Positions 922 through 63,242 are shown, counted from the stretch's first letter. The stretch: DNA of 64,000 nt from Utricularia gibba (GCA_002189035.1 NEEC01000002.1:5208001-5272000), one strand, 5' to 3'. Program-made: numbers and translations. The notes: a model not told the origin generated them from the letters alone.

Positions 922-1808
922 ATGACTAACTTCAGATCTTTTAATGGGGGCAAGCATCATTCGACACCTGGAGTCATCTCAAATGAAGGAGATCGATGTT
1001 GGGAATCTGGGTTTAAAATTGATATACCTAAATTCCATGGTGGGTTACAAGCGGAGGAGTTCCTTAATTGGATAGCGACTGTGGAGGAAGTTCTGGACTT
1101 CAAGAACGTACCAGATGAATGTCAGGTTGCTCTTGTGACCACTCGATTCAGAGGAAGAGCATCTTTTGGTGGCAATAAGTTAAACTCTCATGCACACGAA
1201 TGGGCAAGGCTAAGTCGTAGTTATGAGAGAAGTTGAAGAAACATCTCCATGCCATGTTTCTTTCGTATAACTACTAGCGTCTTTTTATTCAGCAATTGCA
1301 AGGCTTGAAATAGGGAACCAAATCTGTGGAGGATCATACCAAAGAATTTAATCAACCATTTTCCAGTGTTGAACTTTAGGAAACAGAGGAGCAACTGGTG
1401 GGACAATATATTATTACTTTGAGACCCTCTATTCATAAAGTTCTAAATCAACTTGAACCCGTATCTATAGTCGAGGCCTACCAAAGAGCACTCATAATGG
1501 AGCAGCAATCTAAGAAGAACTCTTCACATTTTATTGGATCCTCATCAGAGATAACTCACTCTTTTAGGGATACTCAGGCTCCGAACACCATGGTTAGTTC
1601 CTTAGAACCTAACAGAAGTAAGGTGAGGAGCCAGCTCAAGTGTTACACATGTGGAGAGTTGGGGCATAAACAAGCCAATTGCAAGAAAGCAAGAAAGAAG
1701 GTGCTTCTTGTTGAAAATGAAGATGAGTCTAAGGGTGAACTAGATCCTAGATTTGGGGACCTATTTATTGAGTTAGTAGGTGAAGAGTTTGTAATATTTT
1801 CCAATTGA
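922..1808 (+). pseudogene. CRM-type gag (frameshifted)
   Basis: WESGFKIDIPKFHGGLQAEEFLNWIATVEEVLDFK motif typical of CRM gag; zinc knuckle CYTCGELGHKQANC; split over several ORFs. Confidence 0.85.
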
Positions 1809-1991
1809 CGTACTCTTAGGGCCATCTTGGCAATACGATTGTGATACCCTTCATGTCGGTAAGAAGAATATGTACTCATTTGATTTTATTGGGACTAAGA
1901 TTGTGTTATTGCCCTCTAAACCTCGGTTGAATTGAAAGTTTTGGTCAGTTTGTTCTCATGTAAATAGTTAGTTGAGGAGATTGGGGATAGT

Positions 1992-3296
1992 GTGACCTTC
2001 TTGATATTGGTCAAGGAAATGAATTGGCTACAATGCAGAGAATCAGATGTTGTGAGGAATATTCTCGAGGAATTTTCTAACATATTTCCTGAGGATTTAC
2101 CAGATGGGCTTCCATCATTACGAGACATTTTTCAGCATGATATTGATTTTGTGCCTGGATCTTCCCTCCCCAACAAAGCTCATTATCGTATGAGCCCGAC
2201 TGAGTATGAGGAGATGAGATGGCAAGTAGAAGATCTTGTAGCTAAAGGACATATCCGAGAGAGCTTAAGTCCATGTGCTATACCAGCTATGCTAGTTTCT
2301 AAGAAAGAAGGAACTTGACGGATGTGTGTTGACAGTCAGGTGACTAACAAAATTACTATTAAGTGCCGATTCTCGATACCAGGCCTTGATGATCTTCTTG
2401 ACCAAATTCATGGAGCAACCATTTTTTCATTGTTGGATTTGAGGAGTGGGTATAACCAAATTCATATAAGGCCAGGAGATGAATGGAAGACCATCTTCAA
2501 AATTAGGGAAGGACTTTACGAATGGTTGGTGATGCCCTTCAGGTTGTCTAATGCCCCGAGCACTGTTATGCATGTTATGAATCAGCTTCTATGCCTGTTT
2601 ATGAGCAGATGTGCAATGGTATATTTTGATGATAATTTGATATATAGCAGGGATCAAGAATCTCATGTATAGGATATTTGCGTTGCAATCCAAATCTTGA
2701 AGGGTGCTCAATTTTGTATCTCTCCAAGTAAGTGCTTTTTCTTCACATCATAGGTATTGTTTTTGGGATACATTATTTCTTGTGATGGATTACAAGTGCA
2801 TCCCACAAAGTTGGCTGCGATTCAAAATTGGCCCACACCTACCACTATTACGGAAATCCGTAGCTTCCATGGGTTAGCATCTTTTTATCGTCTCTTTATT
2901 TCCCGTTTCAGCACTATTATAGACCCACTTAAAGATTGTATGAAGGGTAAGGTATTCACATGGACCAAGGAAGCCGAGAAATCATTTGTGCACATTAAGG
3001 AGCTGCTCACATCCACCCTGATATTAGCGCTCCCGGACTTCTCTAGGCCTTTTGAACTTCATTGTGATGCATCCGGTATGGGTATTGGTGCGGTACTCAG
3101 CCAATTGAACAGATCTATTGCTTATTTCGACAAAAAATTGAGGGAAAGCAAAGCTAATTATTCTACTTATGATCTGGAATTATTCGCTGGTGCAATCTAT
3201 TAAACATTGGAGACATTATTTATGTCAGCAGAAATTTATACTTTGGACTAATCATGATTCTCTCCACCATGTTAATTCTCAGGATCAATGCAACAT
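1992..3296 (+). pseudogene. Ty3 pol: reverse transcriptase and RNase H
   Basis: [38 protein letters not shown] (YxDD), [18 protein letters not shown]; contains stops and frameshifts. Confidence 0.92.
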
Positions 3297-9399: not shown

Positions 9400-12300
9400 T
9401 TTCACTTTGGCAGGGGGTTCTTCTGGTTGTCTTTTCCTTGCTTTTTTTGGTCTTCCAACTCCTCTTTGATAAACTAGTGGGAGTGGGGATGGTAGATTAA
9501 CATTATCCCAAAGGTCTGCACTTGGAATTCCTTGAATTCTATGCTATCGCTGTGCTATATACGTTTCCTTCTTGTAGCAATCATCTACATATTCCTCTAT
9601 ACTCAATCCTTTATGCCATAATCTAGCAATTGCCTATGCACATGCAAGAGATGTTAAATCCTAGTTTCTACAGTCACATCTTCTCTCATGTAGGTCTACT
9701 CTCAATGTATCATATGGTACTACCATTTCATACTTCCAATCAGAAATACATAAGGCAATGAGTTCATCAGCAACCTTATATGATTTTTCTAGAGTTGCTC
9801 TAATTCTAGGACAAATTAAATCCTTCCAAGACATGGCAACATTTAATTGCTTGTTATTATGCATAATGAGATGTCTTCTAAATCCCCTCAAGCAACTGAG
9901 ATATAGGTTTATCTCTCAATTCTAAAAGCATAGCATTATAATTCTCACAAAGATTATTAAGTACAATATCACACTTCGCAGTTTTTGTGAAAAAAGCTCT
10001 TTTTCATTGTTGTGGGGGCTTACTCTTTAGCCATGTATGAACTTCTCTATTAATTCCTTCAAGATCGCTCATGTATCCTTCAAAAACAGTTACTCCAGTG
10101 GCTTTAGCAGCACTCCTGATAAACGAAAAATCTACACATCGTAAATGTAAATCTTCCTATCAAATAAATTTATAACCTAATATACATTCTAGTATAAAAA
10201 GAGCATAGTGATTTGGGTCGAACACGAAGAGCAGGTGCTTGTTGTGTGAATGTCAATGCATGAAATCAGTGTCACGTTGGTAAAATTGGTCTTAACTAGG
10301 ACAAAAGATGGAATGCAGTAAAGAAAAGTAACAAGCTTGGGACTCGGTAGTTTCTAATATGAAATGGGTGATGCCTTGAGACTCCTACGGGATGTATGCT
10401 TATCACTAAATATGCTCACACAACCCATAAATCAATCACTTAACTCACAAAGTCTAGGTCTACCCGGACTTATGTTTTCCCATAATCTTTGGTCTACCTC
10501 TAATCAGGGTTGTTAAGATGGTTTCACTATTTCCCCCTCCTGGATCTATCCTGGTTTGTTAAGGAAGTGGTGTGACTTATGGTTGATTAGGTCTAAAGAT
10601 TGACTAGCACAAATCTCCACCTTTCACCCCAAGGCATCCCCTAAGCACTTAACCACTCATAACAAGAGAAAGGAGAAGATTTTCATAACATATCCTAAGC
10701 AATGTTCTGGTCTCAAAGTTAAACAACAACAAGCAATGCATAACAGAAATAGAAAAGAAAAATTGTTCACGCAGTAAATCTAAAACTAGTCTTAGCTAGG
10801 AACAGTATCCATCAACAATGAAAATAAATCTTCAAAGAGAAGCTGTGTCCTTCTGGTTCGTCTCCCTTCCTTCTTCTACCCCCAGAAAATTTCTCCAGAA
10901 AACATGTCGTGAGTCTCCAATGGGGAGATCTGCGCTCTCTCTCCATCTTTTCCCCCTTTTTGTCCAACATCTCCCTTTTTCCTCCTTATATTTTGTGTGT
11001 ACTACTTTTCATACTTTTGGACTCATATTCTGCCACTACACTGTGCATATTTGGCTCATTGGGATTTGTGTTGCGACCTGTACTGCATTGCTCAAAGAAA
11101 ACTATTAGAAGGTTGGGATTAAATCTATAATTTAGTCCCAACTAAAACTAAAATAACATAACTACAGTACTTTGCAAAAAAATATGGAATTGGGCAATAA
11201 AATCTGAGCACAATATAAGTAATTTCCATGCACTCCATCACTCAAAAATATGTGTTATCAACCCCACAAGCAACTTTTTACTGCTTCTCCCATGTGTCCA
11301 GCAAGCTTCATATTACCATGTAGATGCCTTATACAAAAACTATGATCTACATGTGGCATGACCTCCTTAAACATTTCTAATAGCTCTTTTTATTTGTCAG
11401 AAATAAATGTCCATCTATTTCTATCACCAATGTGGAAATCCTGCTTCAACAATTGCAAAAACCATTTCCAAGTTGCCTCATTTTCCTTCTGTATTATTGC
11501 AAAAGCTAAAGGATAAAGATTATTATTTGCATCAATTTCCACTGCAGTCAATAACTGTCCACCGAACTTTCCCTTTAAAAAACATCCATCTACCCCCTAA
11601 GTTGTCTAAATTCATATTGAAAATTTTGCTTCGTTGCTCCATAGCAAATATACAAGGTAAGAAATCTTCTTTCTACTGGTACTGGATGTGGTGGTCTTTA
11701 AAACAATTGTTGATCCAAGATTACTTTTTTGCACTGCATATAAGTATTTTCTTATGTTTGTCCATTGCTCTTTATCACTCCATTAGCCACTTGCATTGCT
11801 CTATTTCTTGGTCTCTGTGCTTTAGCATGTGATATGATGACCTTCATCTTCCTGCAAACATGTTCCTGAAATTCTTTGAGGCCACACTTTGGATGTTGGA
11901 CCATGTATTTTGCAATATACCAATTGTGCCAACGAGACTTCATCCCTTTCAGTGTACGCCTCCTGCCACATATTGTATGCTCAAGATTAAATCTTTTTAC
12001 TACCCAACCACCAACACTTTTCCTTTTGGTTATTATAATGAACCAATCACATCCCTTTACCCTACATTTGGCCCTTACCCGCTCATTATCATTTGTTGGA
12101 AAGTGGATATCTTTCTTTTCTTTAAAGGAATAGGTTTGTATAGACAACTTAGCCTCCTCTTTAGAACTAAACCTTAATCCAAGTGTCAGCTTGGGTCTAA
12201 ATCTATATGTTTTCGAATGAAACATATTTAATGACTTTTTTTTTTCTCTTCACCATCTTCAGAATCCATACTTTGCAAATCTTCCTCATCAACATCACCT

Positions 12301-31084: not shown

Positions 31085-31341
31085 TATTTCACGCCCTCAA
31101 TATTATTCAACGATTAAGATTGATGGGTCCTTTCCCCCTAGGGCACGACATGCAGCTGACTTGCAGGTAATTTTTTTAAATTCCAGTTTGCGTGCATGGA
31201 TCATGAAGATTCCCTAGTTATGATGATGTCGCACTTGCATAGCATCTTTTCTTCACCAAGTTTTTTTTGTTGGTTATGTGAGCCAATTAGTTCTTCTCCT
31301 CTATAAAAAGATCAATTTAGCATCAGTTTTTTTCAAACCCG
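31085..31341 (+). promoter_or_regulatory. Conserved proximal promoter of GDSL copy A
   Basis: Homologous to 39495-39758 and 47485-47786; shared ACATGCAGCTG, TTCCCTAGTTATGATGATGTC and TATA-like CTCTATAAAA about 40-50 bp before the ATG. Confidence 0.7.
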
Positions 31342-34300
31342 ATGGAGTGTTTATTCATAACCCTCCTCGCCTTTTCGACATTCATCTTCTATGCTTCGAC
31401 TCCTGCCGTGGCAACATGCAACTCCATCACTGCCATCTACCAGTTCGGTGACTCCTTATCCGACACAGGGAACTTGATTCAATTGCTCTCTTCCCTGCCG
31501 GCGAGCAAATTCCCATTTGGTATAAAGTATCCTGGCACCCCAACTGGTCGGTGGTGCGATGGTCGTCTCATCGTCGATTACATCGGTAGAACTTAATAGT
31601 CACCATAATAATGCTACATTAATAATATGCACCTTTCTATCATTCTAAAAAGTCATTGTCATTCTAATACCGCAAATTTAAAGAATGGACTTCAGGTTTT
31701 GAAACAACGGTGTAAAACTGTTTTATATGTTTCCCCAGCGGATAATTATGGGCTTCCAAAGCTGGCGCCTTACTGGAACCCCTTGAGTTCGTCGAAGACC
31801 GGTGTTAACTTTGCGGTTGCTGGTTGTACTGCAATTGACCCCGTGAAACTAAAAGCTGATTACGGTATCACGCTTCCATCAACTTGGTGTCTGTCATCAC
31901 AAGTGGGGTGGTTCAAAACATTCCTTGTGACGAAATGCCTCACGCCAACAGGTTTCAATTTTAGGTTGAGATAACCCTTGAGAACATTTCCTAATCCATT
32001 GACTTTACTTGTGAAGGATGCATCAACAAAAACTTTTTGAAGAATTCACTGATAATCTTGGGAGAAATTGGAATCAACGACATCCAAGCTGGTGTTTTGT
32101 GGGGATTAACAATTTCAGATCAACATTCTCTAATTTCTAAAATATGTGCTGAGATTGTTGATGCCGCTAAGGTATTTCTCAGACCTCAGTGATAAAATAT
32201 CATGGCCCTTTGTTGGTTTCAGTTAGATTTGATGCTCTTGTTTTCTTATCATTTTTTCAACTGTATCATTAACATTTTCTTGTTGCGTCACTTGGGCAAT
32301 TAATTCCAATACAACAGTCACCACTATGTAGGAATATATGTTTGTACAACTTCTAAGTACGTGCTTTTCTAATGGCGATAAGTATTGCAATAAAAGCAAC
32401 TTCCAAGTACATTTTCTATTTGTCCATGTGATTAGGAATTGATATCATGGGGGGCAGCCAATATTGCAATTCCCGGGTATTTGCCTATTGGATGCACACC
32501 TCGAGGTCTAGCAGTCTTCGCAAGTTTGAACTCTACGAAGGATAATTTTGGATGCAATGCAGCTGCCAATGACCTTGTCAAATATGCAAACTCACAACTT
32601 CAAGCGGCTGTTCAAAATCTTATCACTACTAATCCAAATGTGAATATCGCCTTTTGGGATTGCAATGGAGCATATCTGAATATTCTTACAAATGCGAATG
32701 CATATGGTAGGTATCAAAATATTTTTACTACATATTGATGAAAGAGCGGTCTTGTGAATCATTTGATATATTGTAGGTTTTGATAAAAACACTCTCCTCC
32801 AATGTTGTTGCGGAAGTGGCGCCTATAACAGCACTAGTCCCCAATTTTGTGGTGGTTTTGGAGTTAAATTGTGTGGGAATTCAAGCACATATATTGGTTG
32901 GGATGGTTGGGATTTGACCGAAGCAGCCCATTACCACATGTTTAATTTCCTTAAACCATACCTATCCCTTGCTCATGGATGCAACCTTCCACCACCACCA
33001 TCTTTGCCACCATCCCTACCACCACTCCCTTCGCCAAGTCTTCCACCATCTCCTTCAATATTGCCGCCATCACCACCATTATTGCCACCATCTCTACCAC
33101 CTCCTCCTTCAACAATTACCCCATCACCATCATTTTTGCCACCACTCTCTTCACCATCCCCTACAACCTTACCGCCATCACCACCATCGTTAACGCCATC
33201 TTTACCACCAACCCCTTCAGCATTGCCACCATCACCGTCATCGCAGCCACCATCCCCATCACCACTCTCTTCACCAACCCCTTCACCATTGCCACCATCA
33301 CCATCATCCTTGCCACCATCCCCATCACCACTTACTTCACCAACCCCTTCAGCATTGCCACCATCACCCACATCCCTGCCACCATCCCCATCACCACTCT
33401 CTTCACCAACCCCTTCAGCATTGCCACCATCACCATCATCCCTGCCACCATCCCCCTCACCACTCTCTTCACCAACCCCTTCAGCATTACCACCATCACC
33501 ATCATCGCAGCCACCATCCCCATCACCACTCTCTTCACCAACCCCTTCACCATTGCCACCATCACCATCATCGCAGCCACCATCCCCATCACCACTCTCT
33601 TCACCAACCCCTTCAGCATTGCCACCATCACCATCATCCCTGCCACCATCCCTGTCACCACTCTCTTCACCAACCCCTTCAGCATTGCCACCATCACCAT
33701 CATCCCTGCCACCATCCCTGTCACCACTCTCTTCACCAACCCCTTCAGCATTGCCACCATCACCATCATCCCTGCCACCATCCCCGTCACCACTCTCTTC
33801 ACCAACCCTTCAGCATTGCCACCATCACCATCATCCCTGCCACCATCCCCGTCACCACTCTCTTCACCAACCCCTTCAGCATTACCACCATCACCCTCAT
33901 CCTTGCCACCATCCCCATCACCACTCTCTTCACCAACCCCTTCAGCATTGCCACCATCACCACCATCCCTGCCACCATCCCCGTCACCACTCTCTTCACC
34001 AACCCCTTCAGCATTACCACCATCACCCTCATCCTTGCCACCATCCCCATCACCACTCTCTTCACCAACCCCTTCAGCATTGCCACCATCACCGTCATCG
34101 CAGCCACCATCCCCATCACCACTCTCTTCACCAACCCCTTCACCATTGCCACCATCACCATCATCCCTGCCACCATCCCCCTCACCACTCTCTTCACCAA
34201 CCCCTTCAGCATTTCCACCATCACCATCATCGCAGCCACCATCCCCATCACCACTCTCTTCACCAACCCCTTCAGCATTGCCACCATCACCATCATCCCT

Positions 34301-34637
34301 GCCACCATCCCGGACACCACTCTCTTCACCAACCCCTTCAGCATTGCCACCATCACCATCATCGCAGCCACCATCCCGGGTACCACTCTCTTCACCAACC
34401 CCTTCAGCATTGCCACCATCACCATCATCGTTGCCACCATCCCCGTCACCACTCTCTTCACCAACCCCTTCAGCATTGCCACCATCACCATTATCATTAC
34501 CACCATCCCCACCACCAGCCCGCTCACCATCTGCTCCACCACCCTCGCGAGCACCACCAACCCTCGAGGACAAGGAGGCTAAAGTTGGGGAAAAAAATAT
34601 CCTCTATGAATTAAATGATGTAATAAATAATCATTGA
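31342..34637 (+). CDS. Secreted GDSL/SGNH esterase-like protein A with C-terminal Pro/Ser-rich tail. Exons 31342-31585, 31739-31951, 32017-32171, 32436-32706, 32777-34637 (1-nt deletion at about 33806)
   Basis: Signal peptide, [26 protein letters not shown], canonical GT-AG introns in phase; block V reads [10 protein letters not shown] (His to Asp); the tail has one frameshift, so status (gene vs sequencing error vs pseudogene) is uncertain. Confidence 0.88.
33211..34500 (+). repeat. Coding minisatellite, 66-bp unit x about 19.5 ([22 protein letters not shown])
   Basis: Units counted from the translation: 9 before and about 10.5 after the frameshift. Confidence 0.95.
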
Positions 34638-34819
34638 TTGTGATGCTTCCTTTGTGTGACTTTCATTTCATGATCTGCGCCTTATCACTATTGAATGCAT
34701 TATTTATGGTATGATAGCTAATGAACAATAAATTGCAACACTACTACATTCAGAATAATATGGGAATTAATGTATTCTCATAAAATCGACTTTGCATGAT
34801 GTAGTGTTGAAGCTTTTAT

Positions 34820-36095
34820 AAGTGTTTCGTGAGAGAATCAGCATTGGCTTCTTTCTTGGAAAATGTTTCGTGAGAGAATCAGCATTTTCAGATTCGGTTG
34901 GTTTACTCAAAGAGTCTCCTCAACTTGGTTGCTTCCCTTGATTTTTTTGATTCCATCTAGCAGCCCTGTTGACCTCAAGATTGAAATCAAAATCCACTGC
35001 ACCAAAAAAAATGCATCAACTAAACACACAAAACAATTGAACACCACTCCCCTGCAATGCCACCAATTTGATAAATGGAAAATTCTATTACGTTGTAATA
35101 AAAATAAAATTCTATATCAAATAAATTTGTAAGCCCTAATAATCACAAAATACAAATTAAACATAAGATGTATATAGTAGAATTTCGGGGTCGATCATAA
35201 AGAGCAAGTGCTTGTTGTTTATTTTAACAGATGAGAGTTCACAGAATAAGTGGTACTCTTAGTCCAAGGTCAGACTAACATCAATAAGTAAGTCTAATAT
35301 GTAAAATCAAATCTCAATGTAGAAAGTAATAAATACTGGTTCTAAGTACAAAATAATACTAAGATGTCTCAAGGTGGTCTAGGTAATATGGTACTAAGGT
35401 CCCTAATTTAATCTACAATGTTTTTATGCCTACAACTCCAAACAACCTAAATCTATCTAGGTCATTACTCATGTTTTTGATTAAGATAGCCCTAATGTCA
35501 TCACCCATTTCACACTTAAATCTATCTATATGCGAAATATTAAAACTAAGTCTACTCAACTCTACTGATTCTACCGAGGACTAACATCTTATCCCCGTTT
35601 TGATTTGTTGGTCTCCCTCTAAATCAAGCATTTGAGTTGCCAAACTATTCGTTCCCCTTCTTAGGTCTACCCGAAGAATGATAGAAACAAAAGCGAGGAC
35701 ACACTCATAGATAACTTAGCAGTCTTAAACCACATCACCATTCTACACTTTAAGGCATCCCTAAAAACTAGACACTCATGTTCAAGAGAAGAAGCATGAT
35801 TTCATAAACATAAAGTGAATAGAACATCTCAAACATTGTTAAAGAAACATTCATGCCAAAATATTCAACAAATAAAAGAAAATAAAGTAGAATAGCTCTA
35901 TTCTTCGCCTGCTATTGTTCATATCACAGAATAATAGTGTTGGGTTGAGTTTCGGTGCTTGTTCTTCACAATAGAGATTTTTCTTTTGGAAATCATCTTC
36001 TACTTCCTTCATTCATGTTCCTTCTCCCCTCCTGAGGTCTGGTCCCATTTTCCTCCATCACTCTCCAAAAATATCTTCATTTCTTTTTTTTTTTT
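34820..36095 (-). mobile_element. Athila-type family A 5' LTR fragment with PBS and start of leader
   Basis: LTR 3' end TGATAAATGG at 35069; the adjacent 35046-35068 reverse-complements to AATTGGTGGCATTGCAGGGGAG, a degenerate TGGCGCCGTTGCCGGGGA PBS. Confidence 0.75.
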
Positions 36096-36400
36096 TCATT
36101 TTCCAAAGTCATACTTGAGTATCACATCGTAGACCCCCACCTCAACTCTATCTTCTAACTCTGTGAATCCTCCCCTGGCTCTTCCACCGTCCGGTCTCCC
36201 TTTCCTACCTATGCTTCCCCGACATAGGCCTACCACGCCTCGTGCCTGCGGCGTTTTCGCTAGACGGTCTTTGCCAGTAGTGCCATCCTCCCCGCCGGCT
36301 GGATGAGCGGTTTGTCCCTCGCTACAGCGTTCTGTTAGGCTAAAGTTAGACTTGCTTCTCAATGAAATGAATTTTTTACTCTTTATACTCCCCTCTCTTT
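36096..36400 (-). mobile_element. Possible highly degenerate LINE RT-downstream fragment
   Basis: PAGRMALLAKTV and GRIHRV...GGGL in different frames at roughly the spacing of the plant L1 AGR...IHW...GGLG motifs; weak. Confidence 0.25.
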
Positions 36401-37412
36401 GACTCGCTTCATTGAATTACGGGTCAACGTAAGTTGACAATGTTCCTAACATGCGTACTATTCCTGGCCTGAACCTACAAACTTTAGACAACTGAATATC
36501 AATCATGTCTCCTCTTTGTATCGTGTGTCTATCGAATTGTTCCTAACACTCCAACCTTCAATTCATTATTTCTCAACAAGTTTGATAGTTTAAATAGCCC
36601 AATTCTCTTGGCAGTCCAACACCTCAAGCATTTCTATGGGAATTAAGGCAGCAATAAGGTGTTTTTTTTTTACTTATGAAAATTTGAGGTACATCTTTCT
36701 TCCAAAAGTTCTAGCAGTGAGATTCCGAGGAATGCTCTAGCCACGTGCTTTATTTCAAGAATTCAGCCTAGTTGAGATGAGTTGGAGTTTTGGAGTATTT
36801 ATCTTTTTAATTTCCTTATTTTGCTTGAGGTTTCTTGTTAGTTGCAACTTGCGAGACTGTGACCTCGTACTATGTTAATGGTTTTTGTTCTAAAAACTGA
36901 AGGCTGAAGTGATACTTGATTATTTCTTAAAATTGGGTTCTTGACTAGTTTTCTGATTTATAGTGGACTTTTGGAGGAGTTCATTAGTCAGTACATTCAC
37001 ACAATTTTTATGCAGATAATTTCTTATTGAAATAATCATGCACAATTTTATACAATGGCACTATCCTAAAATGGTGAATGCTCGGAATCAGAATGTAGAT
37101 GATAATTATGTTATGGATGATGATGCAGAGATGTTAAGAATGGTTGACTGTATTGCTTCAATCATTTTTTATGGCGAAAGTTATCAGAAATTTAGTATCT
37201 TAATATTTAGTTATTTATTAATTCAGTTGATTTAACATAGGAAATATTAGATTAAATAGTCTTTTGAAAAATTTCTGAAAGCCTATTTCAACTTTTGCAG
37301 AAAAAAAAACATCTTTTGTCAAAAGCATTTTTGAGTTTGAATTATAAAAAGTATTTCTATAAAAGTAACAAATTATTATTTTTCCAACTTATTTCCAAAT
37401 GAAATAAGTATT

Positions 37413-38780
37413 TGATGACATACATTTTTCTTGAATTTTATAATACAAAATAGTTATATTTTATTATGGTTTAGGTTAGATAAATGTGGTTTTTCATGTT
37501 TATATGTGTTTGAGTTAATTTTGTGTCTATGTTAAAAAGTGGACTAAATCCTTTGATTTAGTCCACCACCTTTGTTACTAATGTTTAACTAAGTTCAGCA
37601 GGGATATTAGTAGAAAAATCAGACTTCCAAACGTATGGAACAAGTGATAAAGGGCACAAAATCCGAAGAGAGACAAAGAGCATTGTTTTGCCGACACCTA
37701 CAGTCTGCAAGTTCAGGATGGGAACAATGCAATAGAGTGAAGGAGAGGAGATATTTTTGGAAAAAGGGGGAGAGTGGGAACGACACAGAGAGGAGCGCAG
37801 AACGCATGCAAGGGGGCTTCTTCCCTAATGCGAAAAATACCAACCAGAAGAGGAGAAGAAGGCCCTCATCGTCAAGAGCAGCACTAGAACCCAGTCCAAT
37901 GCTACTATTCCGGGCTGTGAACAGTAGCAACCGGGCGACAGAACAATCTTTATTCGCTTTCCGTTTTCTGAATGTTTCGAATTTCTGTATCTGACTTGCT
38001 TACAATGTTTCTATTATTTTCGCCAAATTATCTGAATAAAATCGTGTTTTATTTTTCAAGTATGAGTAACTAAAGTCTTAGGGATGCCATAAGTTAAAGT
38101 ATGGTGGTGTGTGCTTAGGGTTAGTAATAAAATTTATGTTTGTTTCTTAACTCTTGTTTCTATCAATCCATGGGTAGACCTAAGAAGGGGAACAAGTAAC
38201 TTCACAACTTAGATGCTTGATTTAAAGATAGACCTAAGACGGGAGCAGTAGGTGTTAGTCCGAGGTAGAACTGGTAGAACCGGGTAGACCTAGTTCTGTA
38301 TGCTTTGCATGTAGGTAGACCTAATTGCAATGTTGGTTATGATATTAGGGACTAGCTTAGTCGAAAATATGATGAATGACCTGGGTAGACTTAGGTTAGT
38401 TAAAGTTGTGAGTATAGGAACATGGGTGAATTAAATTAAGCACCTTAGCATCACACCACCTGCAGACCCTTAAGGCATCTTCGTATTATTCTGAGTTAGA
38501 ACCAGTACTTGTTACCTTTAGCGTTGAGACTTGATATTGTTTACTGATCTTATTTACCGAACTTGTTTACCACTATTGGTCCGAGCTTAAACTAAGACCA
38601 ATGTTATTCTTAATTATGCATTTACTAAAACACTTAGCAAGCACAAGGTCTTCGTGATCGACTCTGATACCCACTATACAAGTTTTCTAAATTTGTATTT
38701 TGTGTAGATTAGAGGCTATAAATTTATTTGATATAAATTTCTATTTTTATTGCAACGATATTAAGAATTTCCGTTTATCA
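37413..38780 (+). mobile_element. Solo LTR, Athila-type family A (1368 bp)
   Basis: TGATGACATAC...CCGTTTATCA; perfect TSD GTATT (37408-37412, 38781-38785). Confidence 0.95.
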
Positions 38781-39494
38781 GTATTTCTACATCCATTGTT
38801 AGAGTTTCCAAGAACACCTATAATCTATTTCTACTACTATCAATTATTTCAACTTTTTAAATTTACTTCAAAAAAAGTAGAAATAGGCTACAGAAATTTT
38901 CAAAAAAATTACCTAAAACTATTCTATAAAAAGTAAAAACAGAATGATTGTTTGAAGACTATTCCTTCAAGAATTTTACACGCAAATAGGGTATCATTTG
39001 GGGACGAGTTTTTCAAAAATGATTAGAAAAAACCCTAAACCCTAATGAATATTTGACATATAAAAAAATGAAAATTAGTTTTTATAAATAAACCACAAAT
39101 TGCATTCATATTCATTAATAATCTTTATTTTATAAAAATATAATCTAAAAAAATCATATATTATCAATTATTTAATATATCCATATATCTATAAATTATA
39201 TTTTATATTATTGCAATAACTTAAAAAGATTTGTATCAAAATTATAATTTAGAAATTATCTTCTAATTTCCCCATTATTTCTTTCAATTAGGGTTTGTTA
39301 TTTCACTTCAATTTCTGGATACGCTTAGAAAACCAATTCTCTCATAACAAAATCAATTCTTGTTTTACAAGTCATTAAATTTATTCAATTTTTTATTAGA
39401 ATTGACTTTTTAGAATCAGGTAGGGAGAATGCCTTAAAAATTTAAAAGAATTGTTTTATACATAATTATAATCATTGCTCTTACAACGTGAAAA

Positions 39495-39758
39495 TTACCA
39501 TTATTTTATGCCTTCAATACTAACCTAGTAATTAAAATTGATGGATTCTTTCCCTTTGGGCACGACATGCAGCTGACTGGCACATAATGTTCTAAGTATG
39601 CATGTATCATGAATATTCCCTAGTTATGATGATGTCCCACCTTCATAGCATCTTTTTTTTTATGGTTTTCGAAGAAATTAATATTAAGAAATCTCACTCA
39701 AATGTCAGTTTTTTCCTCTATAAAAGGATCAATGTAGCGCCATCTTGTCTCAGACCCA
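39495..39758 (+). promoter_or_regulatory. Conserved proximal promoter of GDSL copy B
   Basis: Same motif string as the promoters of copies A and C. Confidence 0.7.
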
Positions 39759-40725
39759 ATGGAGTGTTCAATCATAACCCTCTTCGCCTTTTCGGCCTTC
39801 ATCTTCTATGGCTCGACTACAGCGGTGGCGACATGCAACTCCATCAATGCCATCTACCAGTTCGGCGACTCCTTATCCGACACCGGGAACTCGATTCAAT
39901 TGCTCCCATTGCAACCCATGCCGGCGAGCAAATTTCCATATGGCATAAAGTATCCTGGCCCCCCATCTGGTCGATGGTGCGACGGTCGTCTCATCGTCGA
40001 CTACATAGGTAGAAGTTGATAATGGAACTCAGAATTGTGATCAAATCTAATCCTACTGAATTCGAAAATTTTGAGAATGAAAGTAAATATGGTAAAATAA
40101 GATGTTTGGAATGATAGCAGCCAATGCTTATGGGATTCCACCAGTGATGGCTTATTGGAAGAACAAGAATTGGTGCAATAGCGGTGTTAACTTTGCGGTT
40201 GCTGGTTGCACTGCAATTGACCCCTTGAAACTAAAAGCTGATTACGGTATCACGCCGCCATCAACTTGGTGTCTGTCATCACAAGTGGAGTGGTTCAAAA
40301 CACTCCTTGTGACGCAATGCCTCACGCCAACAGGTTTCAATTTTAGGTAGAGACAGATAACCCTTGAGAGCATTTCCTAATCCGTTGACTATACTTGTGA
40401 AGGATGCGTCAAGAAAAACTTATTGAAGAATTCAATGATTATCGTGGGAGAAATTGGAATCAACGACATCGAAGCTGGTGTTTCGTCGGGATTAACACTT
40501 CCGCGACTCCAAGTTCTAATCGTCAAGATCATCGAAACCATAATTAATGCGGCCAAGGTTAGTTATCAGAATACGATTGATTATTTTGTTTTCATGTTGA
40601 ATCACTTGAGCAAAATCTATTCCACTACAACCCAAGTTCTAAACGTACCAATGTATGTTTGCAGAACAGCGAAATACGCAACTTGTAAGTACGTTTTCTA
40701 TTTGTGGATGTGATTAGGAATTGAT

Positions 40726-42443
40726 TGTTGGAAGTATGCTTAAAAGCCATGTAATCTAGCATCCCATAATTGTTGTTCTCTCTTTTACGGCAATGTCCAG
40801 AATTGTATGTTTGGAGAATGTATTTTTAAGTTGTTAAAAATATTTGACAGATTCTCCTGTAACATGTATATTCGAATGATTCACAGTTTGAATACTTTGA
40901 TTGGGCATCATAGTTGACTTAACTATCACCTTTGTTTATTTACTGTGTTGATAAAGTGTATATCAAAATACAGTAAACAGTGGGTCGAATGCTGCTTGAC
41001 ATGAGATGTCAGAATAAACATGTGGGGTTCATGAGATGAGCTGACCGAACATGTGACGCTGAATAACATATGCATGGTATTTTACATATGTCAACACAAT
41101 GTTATTCAGATTGCTTTATGAAAATCCTTTGACTTGAGGTTTCATTGTGTCTTATATATTATTGCCTTAGATTTGTTGCTATTTAGGCTTGTTGAAATAT
41201 ACAAGTCAGCGATAGTGATGATCTAAGTCGACAGTATATGAAGATCTCTGAATAACCAAGATGGGATTCATTACTCCGGGTAAACGGAGAAGAGACTTTA
41301 GATTTCCTGATTGTTTCGTCGAGTAAATTCTTGGCCAGGTTGTCGAGATGTTGGAATGAGATTCCAAGTTCTCGTTTTGCCATCGAAACATGTGTTCAGG
41401 ATAATGTTGATGATCTAAATTAAATGGAATTTGACTATCCATGATTCCGTTCTAGATCGAAGTCTCTAATGAAGGGATATTCATAATAATAGCAATCAAG
41501 GTTCGTTATTGAATATCGGATTTAGTTTTAATCGGGTAAATACAATATGCTATGCTAGGCATCCCTTGTATTTTATGAGAAACACGATATCTTGGGACAA
41601 TATCATTGTTAGAGAAATGAGATTTCTCACCTCTCATTGCCGATTAAAAATGAACCTAGTAAATCACACACACAAAGAATTAGAAGTTGTCCGAGACGCT
41701 TGTGATTCGGGTTTTGGTAGACTCTAGCTTGTCTTTAAATTTGGATCACATGTTGGTTAAACATTGGTTATATGGGCTCAGGCCCATATAGGTAACCAAG
41801 GCCCAAATAATATGGGCTGATGATTTGGGCCACTAGGCCCAAGCCCATATTCTTTTAGCCCAAGCCCATATTTATTAGCCCACATTGAAATACGTGCCGC
41901 ATTAAAATGCGTGCCAATGCTTGGCTATAAATAGGAGGCAGTTGGCTTATTTCCTAAGGTTTTTGGAGTTCTTCTTATGGGAAGAGGTGTTCAAGCTCCG
42001 AAAGAGGAAAAGCACTTTAGGTAGAAACGAGACCGGTGAATAGCGATACGAAGAAGAGAACTCGACTCTGGTTTCGAGTTTGGTAATTTTTCTCCGCTTA
42101 TTCCACGTGTTTATTCTGTATTGATAGTCAGTGCAAATATGAGATATTAGCATTGGCTTTACTGTGTTTTCCCAATATGCCGATTCAAGAGTTGAATCAA
42201 GTTTTGATGTTAATATGAGATATTAGCATCAGATGGATGTATATTCCATGAGATGGTCAAAACATATTTTGGGCAAAATGTATGTGCTACATTTGTCGAT
42301 TTAACCTCGTCGGATTTATTTCTAGTTCGTGTGGATAAGCTAGAGGCATCGTTGTTTCAGTGCTATAGCGATATGAGATATCGCTGGTTACGAAAAGGGA
42401 AAAATATTCGTTTTTCCCACCTTCCGCTGCGCGTAACCCGACA
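40726..42443 (+). mobile_element. Solo LTR, Ty1/copia Angela-like (1718 bp)
   Basis: TGTTGGAAGTATGC...CCCGACA; perfect TSD TTGAT (40721-40725, 42444-42448); no coding domains inside. The lineage call rests only on the terminal sequence and length. Confidence 0.88.
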
Positions 42444-43071
42444 TTGATACCATGGGGGGCGGCCAATATTGCGATTCCTGGGTATTTCCCTATTGGATGC
42501 ATGCCTAGAGGACAAGCGGTCTTTGCGAGTTGGAACTCGACGAAGGATAATTCTGGATGCAACGCAGCTGCCAATGACCTTGTGAAATATGCAAACTCAC
42601 AGCTTCAAGCTGCTGTTCAAAATCTTGCCGCTACTAATCCAAATGTGAATATAGTCTTCTTGGACTGCAACGGAGCATATTTGGATCTTCTTAAAAATGC
42701 AAAAGCATATGGTATGTGTCATAACAATTTTCTCCTTTTGATGTTGCAAGTTGATCTATGTTTTTAATTGCAATTTCGTGCGATGTTTCTAAGGGTTCAA
42801 TGAAAGTGCTCTCCTCCAATCCTGTTGTGGAGATGGTTCCTATGCTTGGAATAGTGCAAAGTTCTGTGGTGACCCAGGAGTGTCACTGTGTGCTGATTCT
42901 AGCAAGTATATAAGCTGGGATGGCTCCCAACTCACAGAAGCAGCTCATTCTCATATTTTTGAGTACCTTAAATCATGGATCTCATTGGCTCATGGATGCA
43001 CTCCATCACCGCCACCGCCGCGTCCACCGCTTCCCTCGTCGCCACCACCTCTTCCCCCGTCGCCACCACCA

Positions 43072-43243
43072 CCTACACTGGCCCCAGCACCATCCCCATT
43101 GCCAGAAGACGGCCCACTTCCCTCGCCGCCACAACCATCTACACTGCCCCAGCACCATCCCCATCGCCAGAAGACGGCCCACTTCCCTCGCCGCCACAAC
43201 CATCTACACTGCCCCCAGCACCATCCCCATCGCCAGAAGATGG
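43072..43243 (+). repeat. Coding minisatellite, 66-bp unit x about 2.6 (PSTLPPAPSPSPEDGPLPSPPQ)
   Basis: Direct inspection. Confidence 0.9.
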
Positions 43244-46200
43244 CGAAAATGATGACTAGCTTCCGTTCGACCGAATACTCCTCGCAATGACCTTCATCCA
43301 ATAATAAGGGCCTTACTGTGTCCATTGGTCCCTATATTTGTATATGCTGGTGATTGATAAACACCTAGCCTATCAACCAACTCTGTTTTCCTTCATGTGA
43401 AAAACCTGTATGGTTATTGAATAAATTTCGTTACCATTATAAAACATGCCACCCTTTCTATTTTACATGCTCCATTCTTCAACGTGTAGTGTAATGTTGT
43501 GAGCTGCTTTAAGTCAATATTATCTGTTTTGGATTCATTTGGTTTCCTAATGATTTTATGTTTTCCCCAATAAAAAAAATTCGTACAAAATTTATTGATT
43601 CATTCCATTTATTTTCTTTACTTCCTCCGTCGATAAACAATATGAGATTCATCATCCCTTCCTTACATTGAAAAGGAATTAACTGATGGCCGGAAGCCCT
43701 TTTATTAGAAGTAATTCTAAAAAGATACCTTTGAACCAAATGAACAATCCTAAATCATAGCTTTACATTAAAATGGTGAATACTAATCTAAAAGTGCACT
43801 CATTTTAGAATCATCCCTAATTCGTTATATATTTGTGTATTAGACTTTTTTATTCTCCATCCAAATTTCTTAACTCCTTACAAAGTCAACCAAACTTTTA
43901 ACCATCCGACATTAGGGTTCATTAGAGCTCCAATTATGAAATCGATTCACGGGTATAATACGGAGATAATTCGAAAACGAGCAATTTTGGAACATTGTCT
44001 AGAGTTTTAGAGAGTGTCTGGCTGTGCATTTAGGAACCTTTTATACCATATCTTGAAGGACTGGGTAATGTATCGTTAGGAATTGGATTCATTAATTATG
44101 AATTCTATTTATCAAAATATTAGAATATAATTATAAAATCATAATTTAATCCATCAAAATATTGAAATATAAAAAAATAAAAGTATGTCCCTAAACATTT
44201 GATATAATTACATTAAAAAGCTTTATGAATCATATTCATTATCCCCATATCTCAATTAAATACTATGTAATCCAACTACAAATGAATATCGATACAAATA
44301 CATATATACAAATATAGTTGTTAAGATTTATTTAAAATATATATATCAAATATCTATAACATATTTTATATTTGTTCGTAAACATCTTCATCAGGTAAAC
44401 AGTAAAAAAATTAAAAAATAACAAAATAAAAGAAAAAAAAGATAATTGGATCTAGCCTACTAAAATATCAATTCGGATCTAATTCGATTGAACCTTGGAT
44501 CGAACCTATGTTTTTAAAAAACTGCCTTCCTTACATTGGGAAGGAATTAACTGATGGCTGGAAGGGCATCAAAGATTTAAAGATCACAATCGATCATCGA
44601 GAATCCAGTTGTTTTTGGAGCTCAACGATGATGGGACAAAGTAAATAAATTATCTCCTTTAAATAACATGTCTTCACATGCTAAACCATAATGTAATGAT
44701 CCGTATTAAATGTTGTTGATATGTAAGATCAAATAGATTAAACAAATGAAAGGTGTCCAAATCCATTTTCGCGTGTAATACACAATCTTATGTCAAAATA
44801 ATTACCACAAATATTTTATCTACTTAAGGAGTTGTTTGATAAGAGAGTATAGAGAATCTATACTCAAGTTTACTCATTAGTGTTATTTGATTAACTAGTA
44901 TACATATATCAACCTTATATGGCTTTACCATTCACATTCTCATTTTTTAAGTATATGATTAGTATATACAAATGGAAGTGGGGTTAGTTATACGTATACC
45001 ATTCACATATTTGGACTTCTATTCTCCCAGATCTTATAAACATATTAGTTCCAACTTACAAGTCCCATTCATTTGGTGGCAAATTCAAACACCAGAACCT
45101 ATCCATTTCAAAGTTTGAAACCTGTGAGGGTATTTTGTATCACTTTTTTCATAATCCACTTCTAAGTAAGAAAAACTTATTAGTCACTCATAATTACAGA
45201 GTGACTGATATGTACAATCAAAGTTAAAAAATTAAGTTGATATTATTTCATTTTATTGACTTATATCTAGATACTAAAGACTATTTTACCCCTTATTATT
45301 TGATAATAATAAAATATGAATATAAAATAATTTCAAAAATCTAGAGAGAGTCCATCAAAGACATATGTCTACACATAAAAATAAAGACATCACATTTAGT
45401 CCCTATAATAGCATGTGTCACGTGTTACGATTCTTGATTGATCCAAAGAAAATCATTATTTCAATATCATTTTCCAATTGTATAAAAACTTCATGTACAC
45501 AAAGCTTATGGTAATGCTATGGAGGCTTCAATTGCTAAATACTTATCATTTTCATCTTGATAATTAATTTTATGTCATTTATATTTGCAATTTTACATCC
45601 CTTTTATTTTAATTTCCCTATTTTTAGATAAACTTTATATCTTTCATATTAATCCTTGATTTTTTTGGAGGAAAATTATATTTTATTATTTTTCAGGATA
45701 ATTTTGACTTAATGTAGAAGAAATTCAAGCTAATCTTAGTGAAGTCAAAAATTTGGTCTATCCGAATGAAAACTCGGTTGAAAAATCTCAGAAAATATAA
45801 GATTCATATCTTATCTTGGAAGATTTGAATCTTATATTAAGAGATTTACATCTCATCTTAGAAGTTTCGAATAGAAAATTTGATATAAGTCCATCTAAAA
45901 AGTCCAACAATCTCCACTTCTATATATAGATTGGAGATTTGAGTCTTTGAGTTAGTTGAGTAATCTCGATTTTTGTACTTTTAGATTCATTTGAAGTCGA
46001 TTTCATCAATTTTTGTGTGTTAGAGTTGAGCATGCACGTGTGAATGCTTGTAGCTAACAATCTGCAGTAAAGCTTGGCTTGTGCAAGTGTTGTGCATGTG
46101 ATTGATTTACCATGTTTTTTGACATTTAATTTAAGGTTTGATTTTATTTTTCAAGTTTTCTTTACCAACGTTCTCTTTAATACCACATTATCTTAAGGGA

Positions 46201-47484
46201 ATGTATAAGAATTTCAGATTGACCTCAAGCACCTAAAGAGAAGGTCTCAATTAGACATCATTGATAAGATATATTCTATCTAATTTATTTGCAAGGTGTG
46301 AAGTATATGGGTTAGATTTGAGTGTGAGTAACATATGAGTTACCACAGAAGATGAAATAGTTCTGGTAGTGTAGTTAATTTTATAATCCTACTAAACAAG
46401 GTATGATGTTATAATGATTATCGAGTAGTACTATTTTAAAATTGTACCTCCAAAACTTGCACAAAAAGGTCAATTATTAAGGTTTACACATACAAGCATG
46501 AGTGAATTTTGAGTAAGGTGGATTTTAAATCTAAAACTACTTTTTATTTTGTTTTTAAACTCAAACTTTTATTTTATTTTCGATTTTTTTGAGTCATTTT
46601 TTTAAATAAATTCTAATAATAATTCTATATGAATACGATCTTATTTTATTATTTCAACAATTTTTATTCACTTACAAAATTACCATCATATCTTTAGAAG
46701 TTGTCTAACAATTTCCATGTAATCACATGAAGTAAGAGTGTTAATACCTTGATTTATCCATGAATAGATAGATTGAAGAGTATCATCCATCTTAATTACA
46801 CTATCAACCACTACCCCGTTTGTTTCTTAGGGTTATTTATAAAAGTAGCCGCCCTCCTACTTTCTCTCTTATATTAAGTTAAAAAATTTTAATTGAGAGT
46901 GATCATTTTTTTCACACAATTCATCAAAGTTGGCCATATTTATAATACACCCTTGTTTGTTGTGGTTTACTGATGCAAATGGTAATGGAAAATAAACCAC
47001 TATTTTTCTTTTCCCTCCAACCAAACGTAGGCTCGAAACATTGGAATTTGTGACCAATTTGATGTTTAATAGTTTGAAACAAAAAAATGTGATGAAATTT
47101 TGATTCAATAGTCGGTTCATCCTCACAATTTTATGCGCATATTTTTTATTGGAATAATCGTGCACAATTTTATAAGATGGCTAAAATGGTGACTCGGAAT
47201 CAGAACTTTAAATATGTAAGACAGATTGTTATATATGAAAAACCACATAAGAAGTGATTCTAATACAATTTAGAAAACCAGAATTTATATACATTTGAAA
47301 TTGTTTTTGAAAATGATTATTGTATTCATGTTTGTTATTAATCTTAATTTATAAATATATGAATTAAAAAGTTATTATTTATTAGTGAAAGAAATTGAAG
47401 TGAAACCTCAGACCCTATGACACACAAATAAAAAACAGAACAAAAAATAATTTACTAGTGAAAGAAATAATAGATTTAAGATGA

Positions 47485-47659
47485 AAACTACCATTATTTT
47501 ATGCCTTCACTATAATCCAGCAACTAAAATTAATGGGTTCGTTCCCTCTTGAGCACAACATGCAGCTGATTTGCACATAATTGTTTTAAATATGCATGTA
47601 TCATGAAGATTCCCTAGTTATGATGATGTCCCACCTTCATAGCATCTTTTTTCTCTTCT

Positions 47660-47704
<45 letters not shown>

Positions 47705-47786
47705 CTTGGGATGTTTTCTAACAACTAATACCAAGAACACCCACTTGAATCTGAAATTCTTCTCCTCTATAAAATGGATCAACCTA
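47485..47786 (+). promoter_or_regulatory. Conserved proximal promoter of GDSL copy C, containing an expanded poly-T run
   Basis: Same motif string as A and B; long T run at about 47662-47699. Confidence 0.65.
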
Positions 47787-47873
47787 ATGGAGTGCTTATT
47801 CATAACTCTCCTTGCCTTTATGACCTTCATCTTCTACGCCACATGCAACTCCATCAATGCTATGTACCAGTAG
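47787..47873 (+). pseudogene. Truncated GDSL copy C (28 codons)
   Basis: [28 protein letters not shown]; an 18-nt in-frame deletion relative to A and B; homology stops one codon before FGDS. Confidence 0.9.
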
Positions 47874-61408: not shown

Positions 61409-63242
61409 GTAATATGCAAATACTGTCGTGTTTCTTATAAGCATGGAAAAGGTGGTTCAACTTCGAATTTTTTGAGACATATAGTGAATAAACATCCTGA
61501 TAGATGCAATAGTAATACTTTTCAATCTACTTTAAATGTTGCTGGAGGTAATCTTGCTACAAAATTTACATTCGATAATGAAGTAGCTTAAGTTGATTAT
61601 GTTCTTGTTTTGTTAGCTAGTGGAAAACCTTTTACTCAAGTTGAAAATCCATTCATGTCAACTTTTTTTAAAAACTAGATTGCAACCTCATTTTATGTCT
61701 TTTTCTAGAAGAAAAGCTGATCGGATTGCCTTTGACCAATTTGAAAAAAAAAACAGCTTTAATTTCATCATTTCAATCTCTAAAATGTTGGTTTGCATTG
61801 ACTGCTAATGGTTGGCATGGTAATAATGGTGAGGATTATGTTGTTGTCACTGCTAATTGGATTGATGATTTATGGATTATGAAAAAAAGAGTTTTAGCAT
61901 TTAGACCTTATGACACTCCACACACAGGTGCCCAAATTGTTGAATTGATTACTATTGTTTTTGTTGAATATGGCATTATTGAACGTGTATTTTTTATTAC
62001 TCTTGATAATGCTTTTAATAATTCAAATGCTATTTCAAGCTTGAAAACCTCTATTAATCCTCCTTTAGGTGGTGTTTTTTTTCATTCAAGATGTGTTTGT
62101 CATATTTTGAATTTATGTGTGCAAGATGCTTTACGAATATATGATTTTACAGATGCTCTTGTTTCATTGCATAAGTTGGTTAAGTTAGTCAAGAAATCTA
62201 GTCTTAAAAGAGCCATTTTCAAAAATCTTTGTGAGGCTAGAGGCATTGCATATAGAACTTTAAAAAAGGATTGTTCAACTAGATGGAATTCTACTCTTCA
62301 CATGCTTAGATCTTTGTTTCCATATAAGAGTATTATTCCCTTATTTATGAGAATGCATGTTGATCAAAATTGTTCAATTGATTCTTAAATATTTTTGGAA
62401 TTTCAAACTTTGTGTGAAATGTTTGATGTTTTTTAGAAGTATACTGCTTTATTTAGTGGTTGTTATTATCCAACACTCATTTAGTGTTACCAGCTTTAGT
62501 TACTATTTCAAGTACATTTAAAAAGTATGCTAAAGTTGAGTTTTTGTTAGAAATTGTTTCAATGATGGTTGAAAAATTCGTTAAGTATTTTCTCAATGTT
62601 CTTGTTCTGTTTCTTATCTCCAATATACTTGATCCAAGAGTTAAAGCTACTGGTTTACAAACTGGTTTGAAAGTTTATTGTTCTTATGTTTGTTCTCTTA
62701 AGTTTCCATTATGTCAACCTAATGCTCAATATATGTATGACACTGCAATCACTGCTTTAAATACTTTGTATGACTTATTTGAGGTTGAGACTGGTTGTGC
62801 TAGATCTGTTTCTGAGGTGGCTGAATTTGGCCAACCTTCTGGAATAGATGATTTTTATGCTATGGTTTCAGCTTCTCCTAAAAATTTCACAAAAACCATT
62901 GAGATTGCTTTGTACAATGCAATGCATCAAGTGCAGCATAAAGGAGAAAACTTTGACATTTTGGCTTGGTGGAAGGGTCAATCCTCGGTTTATCCTACTT
63001 TGGCAGCAGTGGCTAGAGCAATTCTCACATCCCCTATGTCTACAGTTGCATCAGAAAGTGCATTCAGTCTAGGTGGAAGAGTATTGTCACCAAGGCGGCT
63101 CAAATTAGCAGATAAAACATTGGAGGTTTGCATTTGTTTGAAGGATTGGACTGGAGCAAATCATAGAATGCAAAATCTTGTCTTAGATGAAGATAATGAT
63201 GATGACGACGAAGATGATGGTTCTACATCAGAAAAAGAGTAA
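61409..63242 (+). pseudogene. hAT (Ac/DAYSLEEPER/RICESLEEPER-like) transposase pseudogene
   Basis: BED finger CKYC...STSNFLRHIVNKH, LTANGW, ITLDNA, RCVCHILNL, TRWNST, dimerisation domain FDILAWWK...STVASESAFS; stops near 61588, 62388 and 62436, and a frameshift at the A-run near 61745. Confidence 0.93.

Follow-up and report, generated by a model that had tools for sequence, protein, structure and literature searches.

The question raised by this locus is whether an enzyme fold that has lost a catalytic residue was put to another use, or is simply falling into disrepair. In a 64,000-nucleotide stretch of the Utricularia gibba genome (GCA_002189035.1, NEEC01000002.1:5208001-5272000; the whole stretch is referred to as the window), two tandem genes, A and B, encode predicted secreted proteins of the GDSL/SGNH hydrolase type, in which the catalytic histidine of block V is replaced and the domain runs on into a proline- and serine-rich tail. 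An earlier note on this DNA had read them as pseudoenzymes, or as enzymes of altered chemistry, fused to a tail of the hydroxyproline-rich glycoprotein (HRGP) type, or else as enzymes with a relocated His. We find that the tandem His-less, tailed GDSL genes are probably a young, lineage-specific family of repurposed enzymes that is partly decaying. The more detailed form of this reading is a lineage-specific His-less family within the acetylajmalan-esterase-like (AAE-like) clade, with HRGP-like tails and evolving by birth and death, in which A may still function and B died recently; we assign it a probability of about one half.

Replacement of the block V histidine in genes A and B

The two paralogous genes have five exons each and lie on the + strand (A, 31342-34614; B, 39759-43290). 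Splice sites were read off the sequence and then checked by script, exons were searched singly, and spliced models assembled by script from the window sequence were used in local alignment, tree construction and estimation of selection. The ordinary introns of both genes are all GT-AG, and the five exon frames are open save for an insertion in B. The exons are as follows:

31342..31585, + strand: gene A exon 1, with a signal-peptide-like N-terminus, the block I nucleophile Ser and the block II Gly
31739..31951, + strand: gene A exon 2, with GT-AG borders, a continuous frame and a tblastn self-map
32017..32171, + strand: gene A exon 3, with block III (oxyanion Asn, and Asp)
32436..32706, + strand: gene A exon 4, matching Pfam Lipase_GDSL at E 1.1e-4
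32777..34614, + strand: gene A exon 5, of which 32777..32982 is the GDSL part and the remainder is the tail
39759..40008, + strand: gene B exon 1, with the same block I as A
40118..40333, + strand: gene B exon 2, with script-checked splice sites
40403..40557, + strand: gene B exon 3, carrying block III
40718..40725, + strand: gene B exon 4, opening 8 bases, upstream of the insertion
42449..42711, + strand: remainder of gene B exon 4, matching Pfam Lipase_GDSL at E 5.3e-5 and 23.9 bits
42794..43290, + strand: gene B exon 5, with block V W-D-G-S-Q and the tail from 43000

Single exons matched the Lipase_GDSL profile (PF00657) with E values from 5e-5 to 8e-3, and the 23.6-bit cut-off was passed by B exon 4 only. 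Scores below the cut-off are expected here, because single exons are pieces of the profile; A exon 1, for example, covers profile positions 1-30 (E 0.006). Both models start with a 24-residue hydrophobic N-terminus with AVA followed by TCNS, as read by eye, and the mature N-terminus would enter block I about 10 residues past the predicted cleavage site.

The catalytic apparatus is otherwise retained in both copies, together with the structural Cys and Gly residues; the earlier note had likewise listed the Ser block, the Gly of block II and the GxND of block III as present. Block I is identical in A and B (GDSxxDxGN type, with the nucleophile Ser), and its G, D, S, D, G and N occupy columns that are invariant in 24 of 24 relatives. 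Block II (PTGRWCDGR) and block III (GEIGINDI), which supply the Gly and Asn of the oxyanion hole, are kept, and their residues G74, G171 and N173 sit in columns that 90% or more of the relatives share. Both copies also have the Asp of block V (D337 in A numbering). Block V itself reads W-D-G-W-D in A and W-D-G-S-Q in B, so that the position of the catalytic His is occupied by Asp in A (GAT, 32911-32913) and by Gln in B (CAA, 42928-42930). These codons and coordinates are as first reported, and each codon is indeed one substitution, a different one in each gene, away from CAT.

The comparison with relatives indicates how unusual this replacement is. A full HMMER scan with A exon 5 against 1.84 billion representative sequences returned 142 hits, and the motif W-D-G-x-H was present in 137 of the 137 relatives with a recognizable block V (fragments and two further cluster members included). 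Among 24 full-length aligned relatives, the His is invariant (24/24). Conservation reaches 90% or more in 45 columns of this alignment, and A is exact at 40 of them; the five deviations are three conservative changes (Tyr to Phe, Val to Ile and again Tyr to Phe), Pro to Ser, and His to Asp. When only the columns invariant in 24/24 are considered, His is the sole change in A. The pattern in the conserved columns of B is like that of A, with one extra change, Asn to Ala. Judging by these alignments, the loss of His in A and B is no chance pattern.

Among the closest proteins by local BLASTP are Salvia miltiorrhiza XP_057790052.1 and Rauvolfia serpentina WKU61931.1 ("acetylnorajmalan esterase like-3"). 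The spliced models of A and B share 41-43% identity with AAE-like GDSL proteins over 333-361 residues (E 1e-81 to 1e-89), and the best relatives are 45-48% identical over A exon 5 alone. In the tree, A and B group with the acetylajmalan-esterase-like proteins of Salvia, Rauvolfia and Genlisea with a support of 96, which places the genes within this clade in a genome of Lamiales type. AAE-like proteins share with A and B blocks I-III, the Cys pattern and a putative secretory N-terminus; unlike A and B, they keep the block V His and end some 10-35 residues past it. The stem leading to A and B measures 1.42 changes per site, roughly double the path of the neighbors, and the tree indicates that the burst of change came before the A/B duplication.

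After the duplication, both domains evolved mostly under constraint. A and B are 74% identical, with a nonsynonymous divergence (dN) of 0.160 and a synonymous divergence (dS) of 0.428; the resulting dN/dS of 0.37 is significantly below 1 (Z 4.9 for dN < dS). With this value, neither lineage can have been neutral since the split, because the other would then need a negative ratio. Therefore, the A and B domains were both constrained for most of the time since they separated. The terminal branches are of similar length (0.23 for A and 0.22 for B), and Tajima-type relative-rate counts are not significant. The equal rates imply that the insertion that disrupts B is recent.

Proline-rich tails and the interruption of gene B

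In place of the usual end of the domain, both genes continue, with no stop in between and through a common junction (LAHGC, then a run of Pro), into a Pro/Ser-rich extension. Relatives end at a median of 31 residues past the His, and a Pro-rich tail was found in none of those recovered. In A, 567 residues lie beyond the His position; the extensions span 96-543 residues across A and B. The tail of A includes an array of about 20 units of 66 nucleotides (22 residues each) at 33206-34517, and is divided as follows:

32983..33805, + strand: A tail in the Pro/Ser frame, 274 residues, 43% Pro and 32% Ser, 83% proline, alanine, serine and threonine together (PAST), no Tyr, Lys or Cys
33806..33808, + strand: frameshift site in the A tail, where unit 10 has CCC and the other 19 units have CCCC
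33809..34614, + strand: A tail past the frameshift, 269 residues, 47% His and 5 Tyr, with the stop at 34612-34614

The Pro/Ser frame of A is itself open to a stop at 34635-34637. In B, a 1-nucleotide deletion in the C-run at 43147-43150 has the similar effect that the Pro frame is left after 50 residues. The stop of B as encoded is at 43288-43290, and the end at 43259 given by the earlier note corresponds to the stop of the Pro frame (43257-43259). Followed along the Pro frame, the A tail has PAST fractions of 83% and 78%, with 83 SP and 22 TP dipeptides. As literally encoded, the PAST fractions are lower, 51% for the A tail and 54% for the B tail, because of the frameshifts. As encoded, A departs from the SP/TP-rich, Tyr-free tail first described, and shifts to a sequence with 47% His and 5 Tyr residues.

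We also examined the tails for features of particular HRGP classes. In the extensin test for SP3-5 motifs, A has no SPPPP and one SPPP, and there is no Tyr in its Pro-frame repeats; the start of the B tail has two SPPPP and one SPPP, with no Tyr motif. The C-termini of A and B are hydrophilic in either frame, which makes a glycosylphosphatidylinositol (GPI) signal unlikely; the earlier note had seen no obvious one. A Pfam scan of the tails matched no family, and the repeat units of A and B cannot be aligned with each other at the DNA level. The composition of the tails fits that of an O-glycosylated spacer resembling arabinogalactan proteins (AGPs) or proline-rich proteins (PRPs), and not that of a cross-linking extensin. 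Both C-run deletions occur in otherwise clean arrays; they may have arisen very recently by mutation, or they may be assembly errors at homopolymers. A codon-position test on the 20 tail units found 27 of 51 differences, and 5 of 14 distinct variable columns, at third positions; it was dropped, as the units are not independent.

It should be noted that all six frames of the array are open because there is almost no G on the + strand. Spurious long open reading frames (ORFs) result, among them a Gly/Asp-rich one of 413 residues on the minus strand (33332-34573) and one of 552 residues in another + frame (32979-34637), and these might pass for genes in gene callers. The 413-residue ORF has no Pfam match and starts with TTG.

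Gene B cannot make the protein that was first read from it. Its fourth exon is broken by a 1718-bp insertion, and a third copy of the gene survives downstream as a remnant:

40726..42443, + strand: insertion in B exon 4, 1718 bp, with TGTTGG...CCGACA ends and a 5-bp TTGAT duplication
47391..47871, + strand: remnant of a third paralogue, consisting of a TATA box, 28 exon 1 codons and a promoter that matches the A and B promoters at 78-89% identity

The two copies of the TTGAT target duplication are at 40721-40725 and 42444-42448, and the equivalent uninterrupted site is visible in A exon 4 by comparison. From its sequence, the 1718-bp element bears the signature of a retrotransposon solo long terminal repeat (LTR); the window contains no second copy of it. 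The reading frame that enters the insertion from B exon 4 closes after 13 codons. Splicing was considered as a way to rescue B and was rejected: exact removal is impossible, and the sole in-frame cryptic acceptor, between 42368 and 42369, adds 25 residues. A better-looking acceptor lies 8 bases upstream of it, between 42360 and 42361, and is out of frame. The termini of the insertion are near-inverted over 6 bp, a TATA-like site is present near 41926, and short tandem repeats occupy 41837-41915. The remnant of the third copy stops just before the GDSL motif, and is followed by unrelated AT-rich DNA.

Possible repurposing, decay and altered chemistry

The loss confined to the His, the presence of a tail that relatives lack, and a dN/dS of 0.37 together make a pseudoenzyme or altered-chemistry reading reasonable for A. 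Several observations weigh against a repurposed family, and most of these are what would be expected if all copies of the array, A included, were unexpressed or dying pseudogenes and their defects were stages of a single degeneration. As assembled, both tails are frameshifted by one nucleotide, B is broken by the LTR insertion in exon 4, the third copy is a truncated stump, and the window is rich in transposable elements, with retroelement, MuDR and hAT ORFs. No A/B-like protein or transcript fragment was found in public collections, either by the full HMMER scan or by a word search that set A exon 5 with its tail against candidates of 336-1069 and 61-192 residues, and exon 4 against candidates of 50-158 residues; nothing firm about expression follows from this negative result. 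The exon-1 ORFs of A and B are likewise not on record in public assemblies, by exact look-up. The long stem of A and B and the removal of His by different single substitutions in the two genes are also in line with decay, since the latter is what relaxed constraint predicts. Codon parsimony prefers separate losses of the His after the split, since a CAT ancestor requires 2 changes and a CAA or GAT ancestor requires 3; the low dN/dS may therefore largely predate the losses. Conversely, the dN/dS is significantly below 1, no splice site or exon frame is damaged in either gene apart from the LTR, near-invariant residues other than the His are kept or conservatively changed, and the 1.3-kb array of A has a single indel in 20 units, while both frameshifts are C-run deletions that possibly reflect assembly error. 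The earlier note had associated simple decay with absent expression and a dN/dS of about 1; the ratio found is 0.37, and decay holds in part, at least for B, given the LTR break, the tail frameshifts and the truncated copy. Decay of the entire array is unlikely in our estimate, and is nevertheless the most serious of the rival explanations.

Another group of explanations would have the proteins remain enzymes. The His residues at +6 and +8 of the lost position are present in both copies (TEAAHYH in A and TEAAHSH in B), as previously noted, and one of them could take over as a relocated catalytic base. However, among relatives that keep the catalytic His, a +6 His occurs in 18 of 137, a +8 His in 25 of 137, and both occur in 5, so that the pair belongs to the helix by inheritance and is no compensation. 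The nearest relative, P0004, was folded from an alignment of 26 relatives (pLDDT 89.9, pTM 0.86). In this model, the catalytic His346 is located in a loop, and is followed by a rigid C-terminal helix (349-366) that starts at +3; the +6 and +8 positions are the fourth and sixth residues of that helix. The best solved matches of the model are the GDSL enzymes PlaA and ChoE (bacterial and fungal; E 1e-13 to 1e-14), and a sequence search of solved structures with exon 4 gave a chance hit only. Given both the relatives and the model, relocation of the base is very improbable. The usual view is that an SGNH domain without its His binds substrate with no turnover. According to its title, PDB entry 6uqy contains the ChoE H288N mutant crystallized with the substrate acetylthiocholine, which fits that view.

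A different chemistry, in which the Asp of A serves as the base in a Ser-Asp pair, or in which the protein is an acyltransferase with little need of the triad, has somewhat more in its favor. Ser-Asp catalytic pairs are used by patatin and cPLA2. Both copies retain the Ser and the triad Asp along with the Gly and Asn of the oxyanion hole, the relatives in the clade are named after esterases of specialized metabolism, and there is a precedent within the GDSL family in the tomato acyltransferase SlCGT (PMC13415971). On the other hand, the Gln of B cannot act as a base, such that the family as a whole keeps none at this position, and mutation of the triad strongly reduces activity in most characterized GDSL transferases; we regard altered chemistry as rather improbable. 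The possibility that assembly errors account for the His codons or for the tails, or that the array is a separate gene such as the 413-residue minus-strand ORF, can draw on the location of both tail frameshifts in homopolymer runs and on the six open frames. It is hard to reconcile with two paralogues that lack the His by different codons, with the continuous reading from the GDSL domain through the shared LAHGC-Pro junction, and with the absence of a family match and the TTG start of the minus-strand ORF, and we give such an artefact hardly any weight.

Under the favored reading, repurposing with birth and death, the history of the family could be as follows. On the fast-evolving long stem, the family would have gained a Pro/Ser-rich C-terminal extension at the point where the relatives terminate. 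The block V His, the general base, would have become dispensable and given way to Asp in A and to Gln in B. Copy A would be a functional, or until very recently functional, apoplastic protein incapable of canonical Ser-His-Asp ester hydrolysis, whose most likely role is to bind a ligand of acyl or ester type, or merely to become acylated, without turnover; its tail may be a hydroxyproline-O-glycosylated spacer or a tether to the wall. B would have been inactivated recently, as part of a turnover of the array by birth and death. A bolder version makes A an expressed member of a so far undescribed class of wall proteins, in which the SGNH domain lacks the general-base His but retains the nucleophile and the oxyanion hole. 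Such a domain would bind acyl or ester ligands, accept an acyl group in a single turnover or, in A, act as a Ser-Asp enzyme, and a long O-glycosylated Pro/Ser rod at the C-terminus would be its tether. This version is doubtful, and we put it forward tentatively.

The immediate surroundings contain the following further features:

31302..31309, + strand: gene A TATA box TATAAAAA, 33 bases 5' of the ATG
31283-31287, + strand: gene A CCAAT motif, by direct reading
39719..39726, + strand: gene B TATA box TATAAAAG, by direct reading
1398-3203, + strand: transposon-derived ORF flanking the array, by domain match
11752-12225, - strand: transposon-derived ORF flanking the array, by domain match
62460-63242, + strand: transposon-derived ORF flanking the array, by domain match

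The distance from TATA box to ATG is about 35 bases in both genes, and the A and B promoters are about 76% identical over the upstream 190 bp and 79% identical over the last 52 bp. The domains of the flanking ORFs are a zinc knuckle and reverse transcriptase RNase H (LTR retroelement), a MuDR DNA-binding domain, and hAT dimerization and hAT-like RNase-H-fold domains. The AT-rich DNA between A and B contains a GC-rich stretch with an Arg/Gly-rich ORF of 88 residues (36096-36362, - strand). An Rfam scan of the whole window matched no family.

Relation to known proteins and significance

APG-type GDSL proteins have an N-terminal Pro-rich region and intact catalytic residues. The APG-type group of At1g20130 resembles A and B in combining a secreted GDSL domain with a Pro-rich, extensin-like stretch; A and B are set apart from it, by description, in that the Pro-rich region is C-terminal, the His is missing and the tail of A is far longer. 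At1g20130 is listed as a proline-rich extensin-like wall protein (PMC5326801). The tails of A and B share with classical and chimeric HRGPs (AGPs, extensins and PRPs) a PAST content of 78-83% in the Pro frame and SP/TP dipeptides. They differ in that Tyr cross-link motifs and a hydrophobic C-terminus of the GPI type are both absent, and A is almost without SP3-5.

Non-enzymatic members are known for the SGNH fold, for example, the OSK domain of Oskar (PMC10792757). GDSL proteins that lack a catalytic residue are known as well, and are rare: 3 of the 116 GDSL proteins of Arabidopsis have been called dead enzymes (PMC4757993). The accepted Arabidopsis pseudoenzyme At1g54030 (MVP1/GOLD36/ERMO3) has Gly in place of the block I Ser and is reported to be without lipase activity; like A and B, it retains the GDSL fold despite the loss of one catalytic residue, and it is reported to have acquired another cellular role (PMC4757993). 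Unlike A and B, it has lost Ser and not His, has no Pro-rich tail, belongs to another clade and, according to the same literature, plays a role in the endomembrane system. SlCGT, a chlorogenate:glucarate caffeoyltransferase reported to have lost hydrolytic activity, sets a precedent for a GDSL protein that could do without a working His, since triad mutants lost at most 40% of its activity (PMC13415971); GDSL proteins often fail in bacterial production (PMC13415971). Compared by description, this enzyme differs from A and B in that all triad residues are present and there is no tail. A literature search in an open library found no GDSL protein that has lost its His naturally or has an HRGP-like tail at the C-terminus; beyond general statements, it turned up only APG-type chimeras of the N-terminal kind and the Ser-less At1g54030. 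The known kinds are the GDSL pseudoenzyme and the GDSL-PRP chimera, and A and B are most likely a variant that combines the loss of His with a C-terminal tail.

The locus calls for care in annotation: the LTR knock-out and the tail frameshifts yield misleading automated proteins, such as one with a 47% His tail. Plant GDSL families are very large, and annotation as esterase or lipase is routine for their members. If the reading favored here is true, the loss of the catalytic base under constraint, together with a glycoprotein-like tail, would represent an enzyme fold repurposed for binding in the wall or for an altered acyl chemistry, and the Asp and Gln replacements in A and B would constitute a built-in set of natural mutants.

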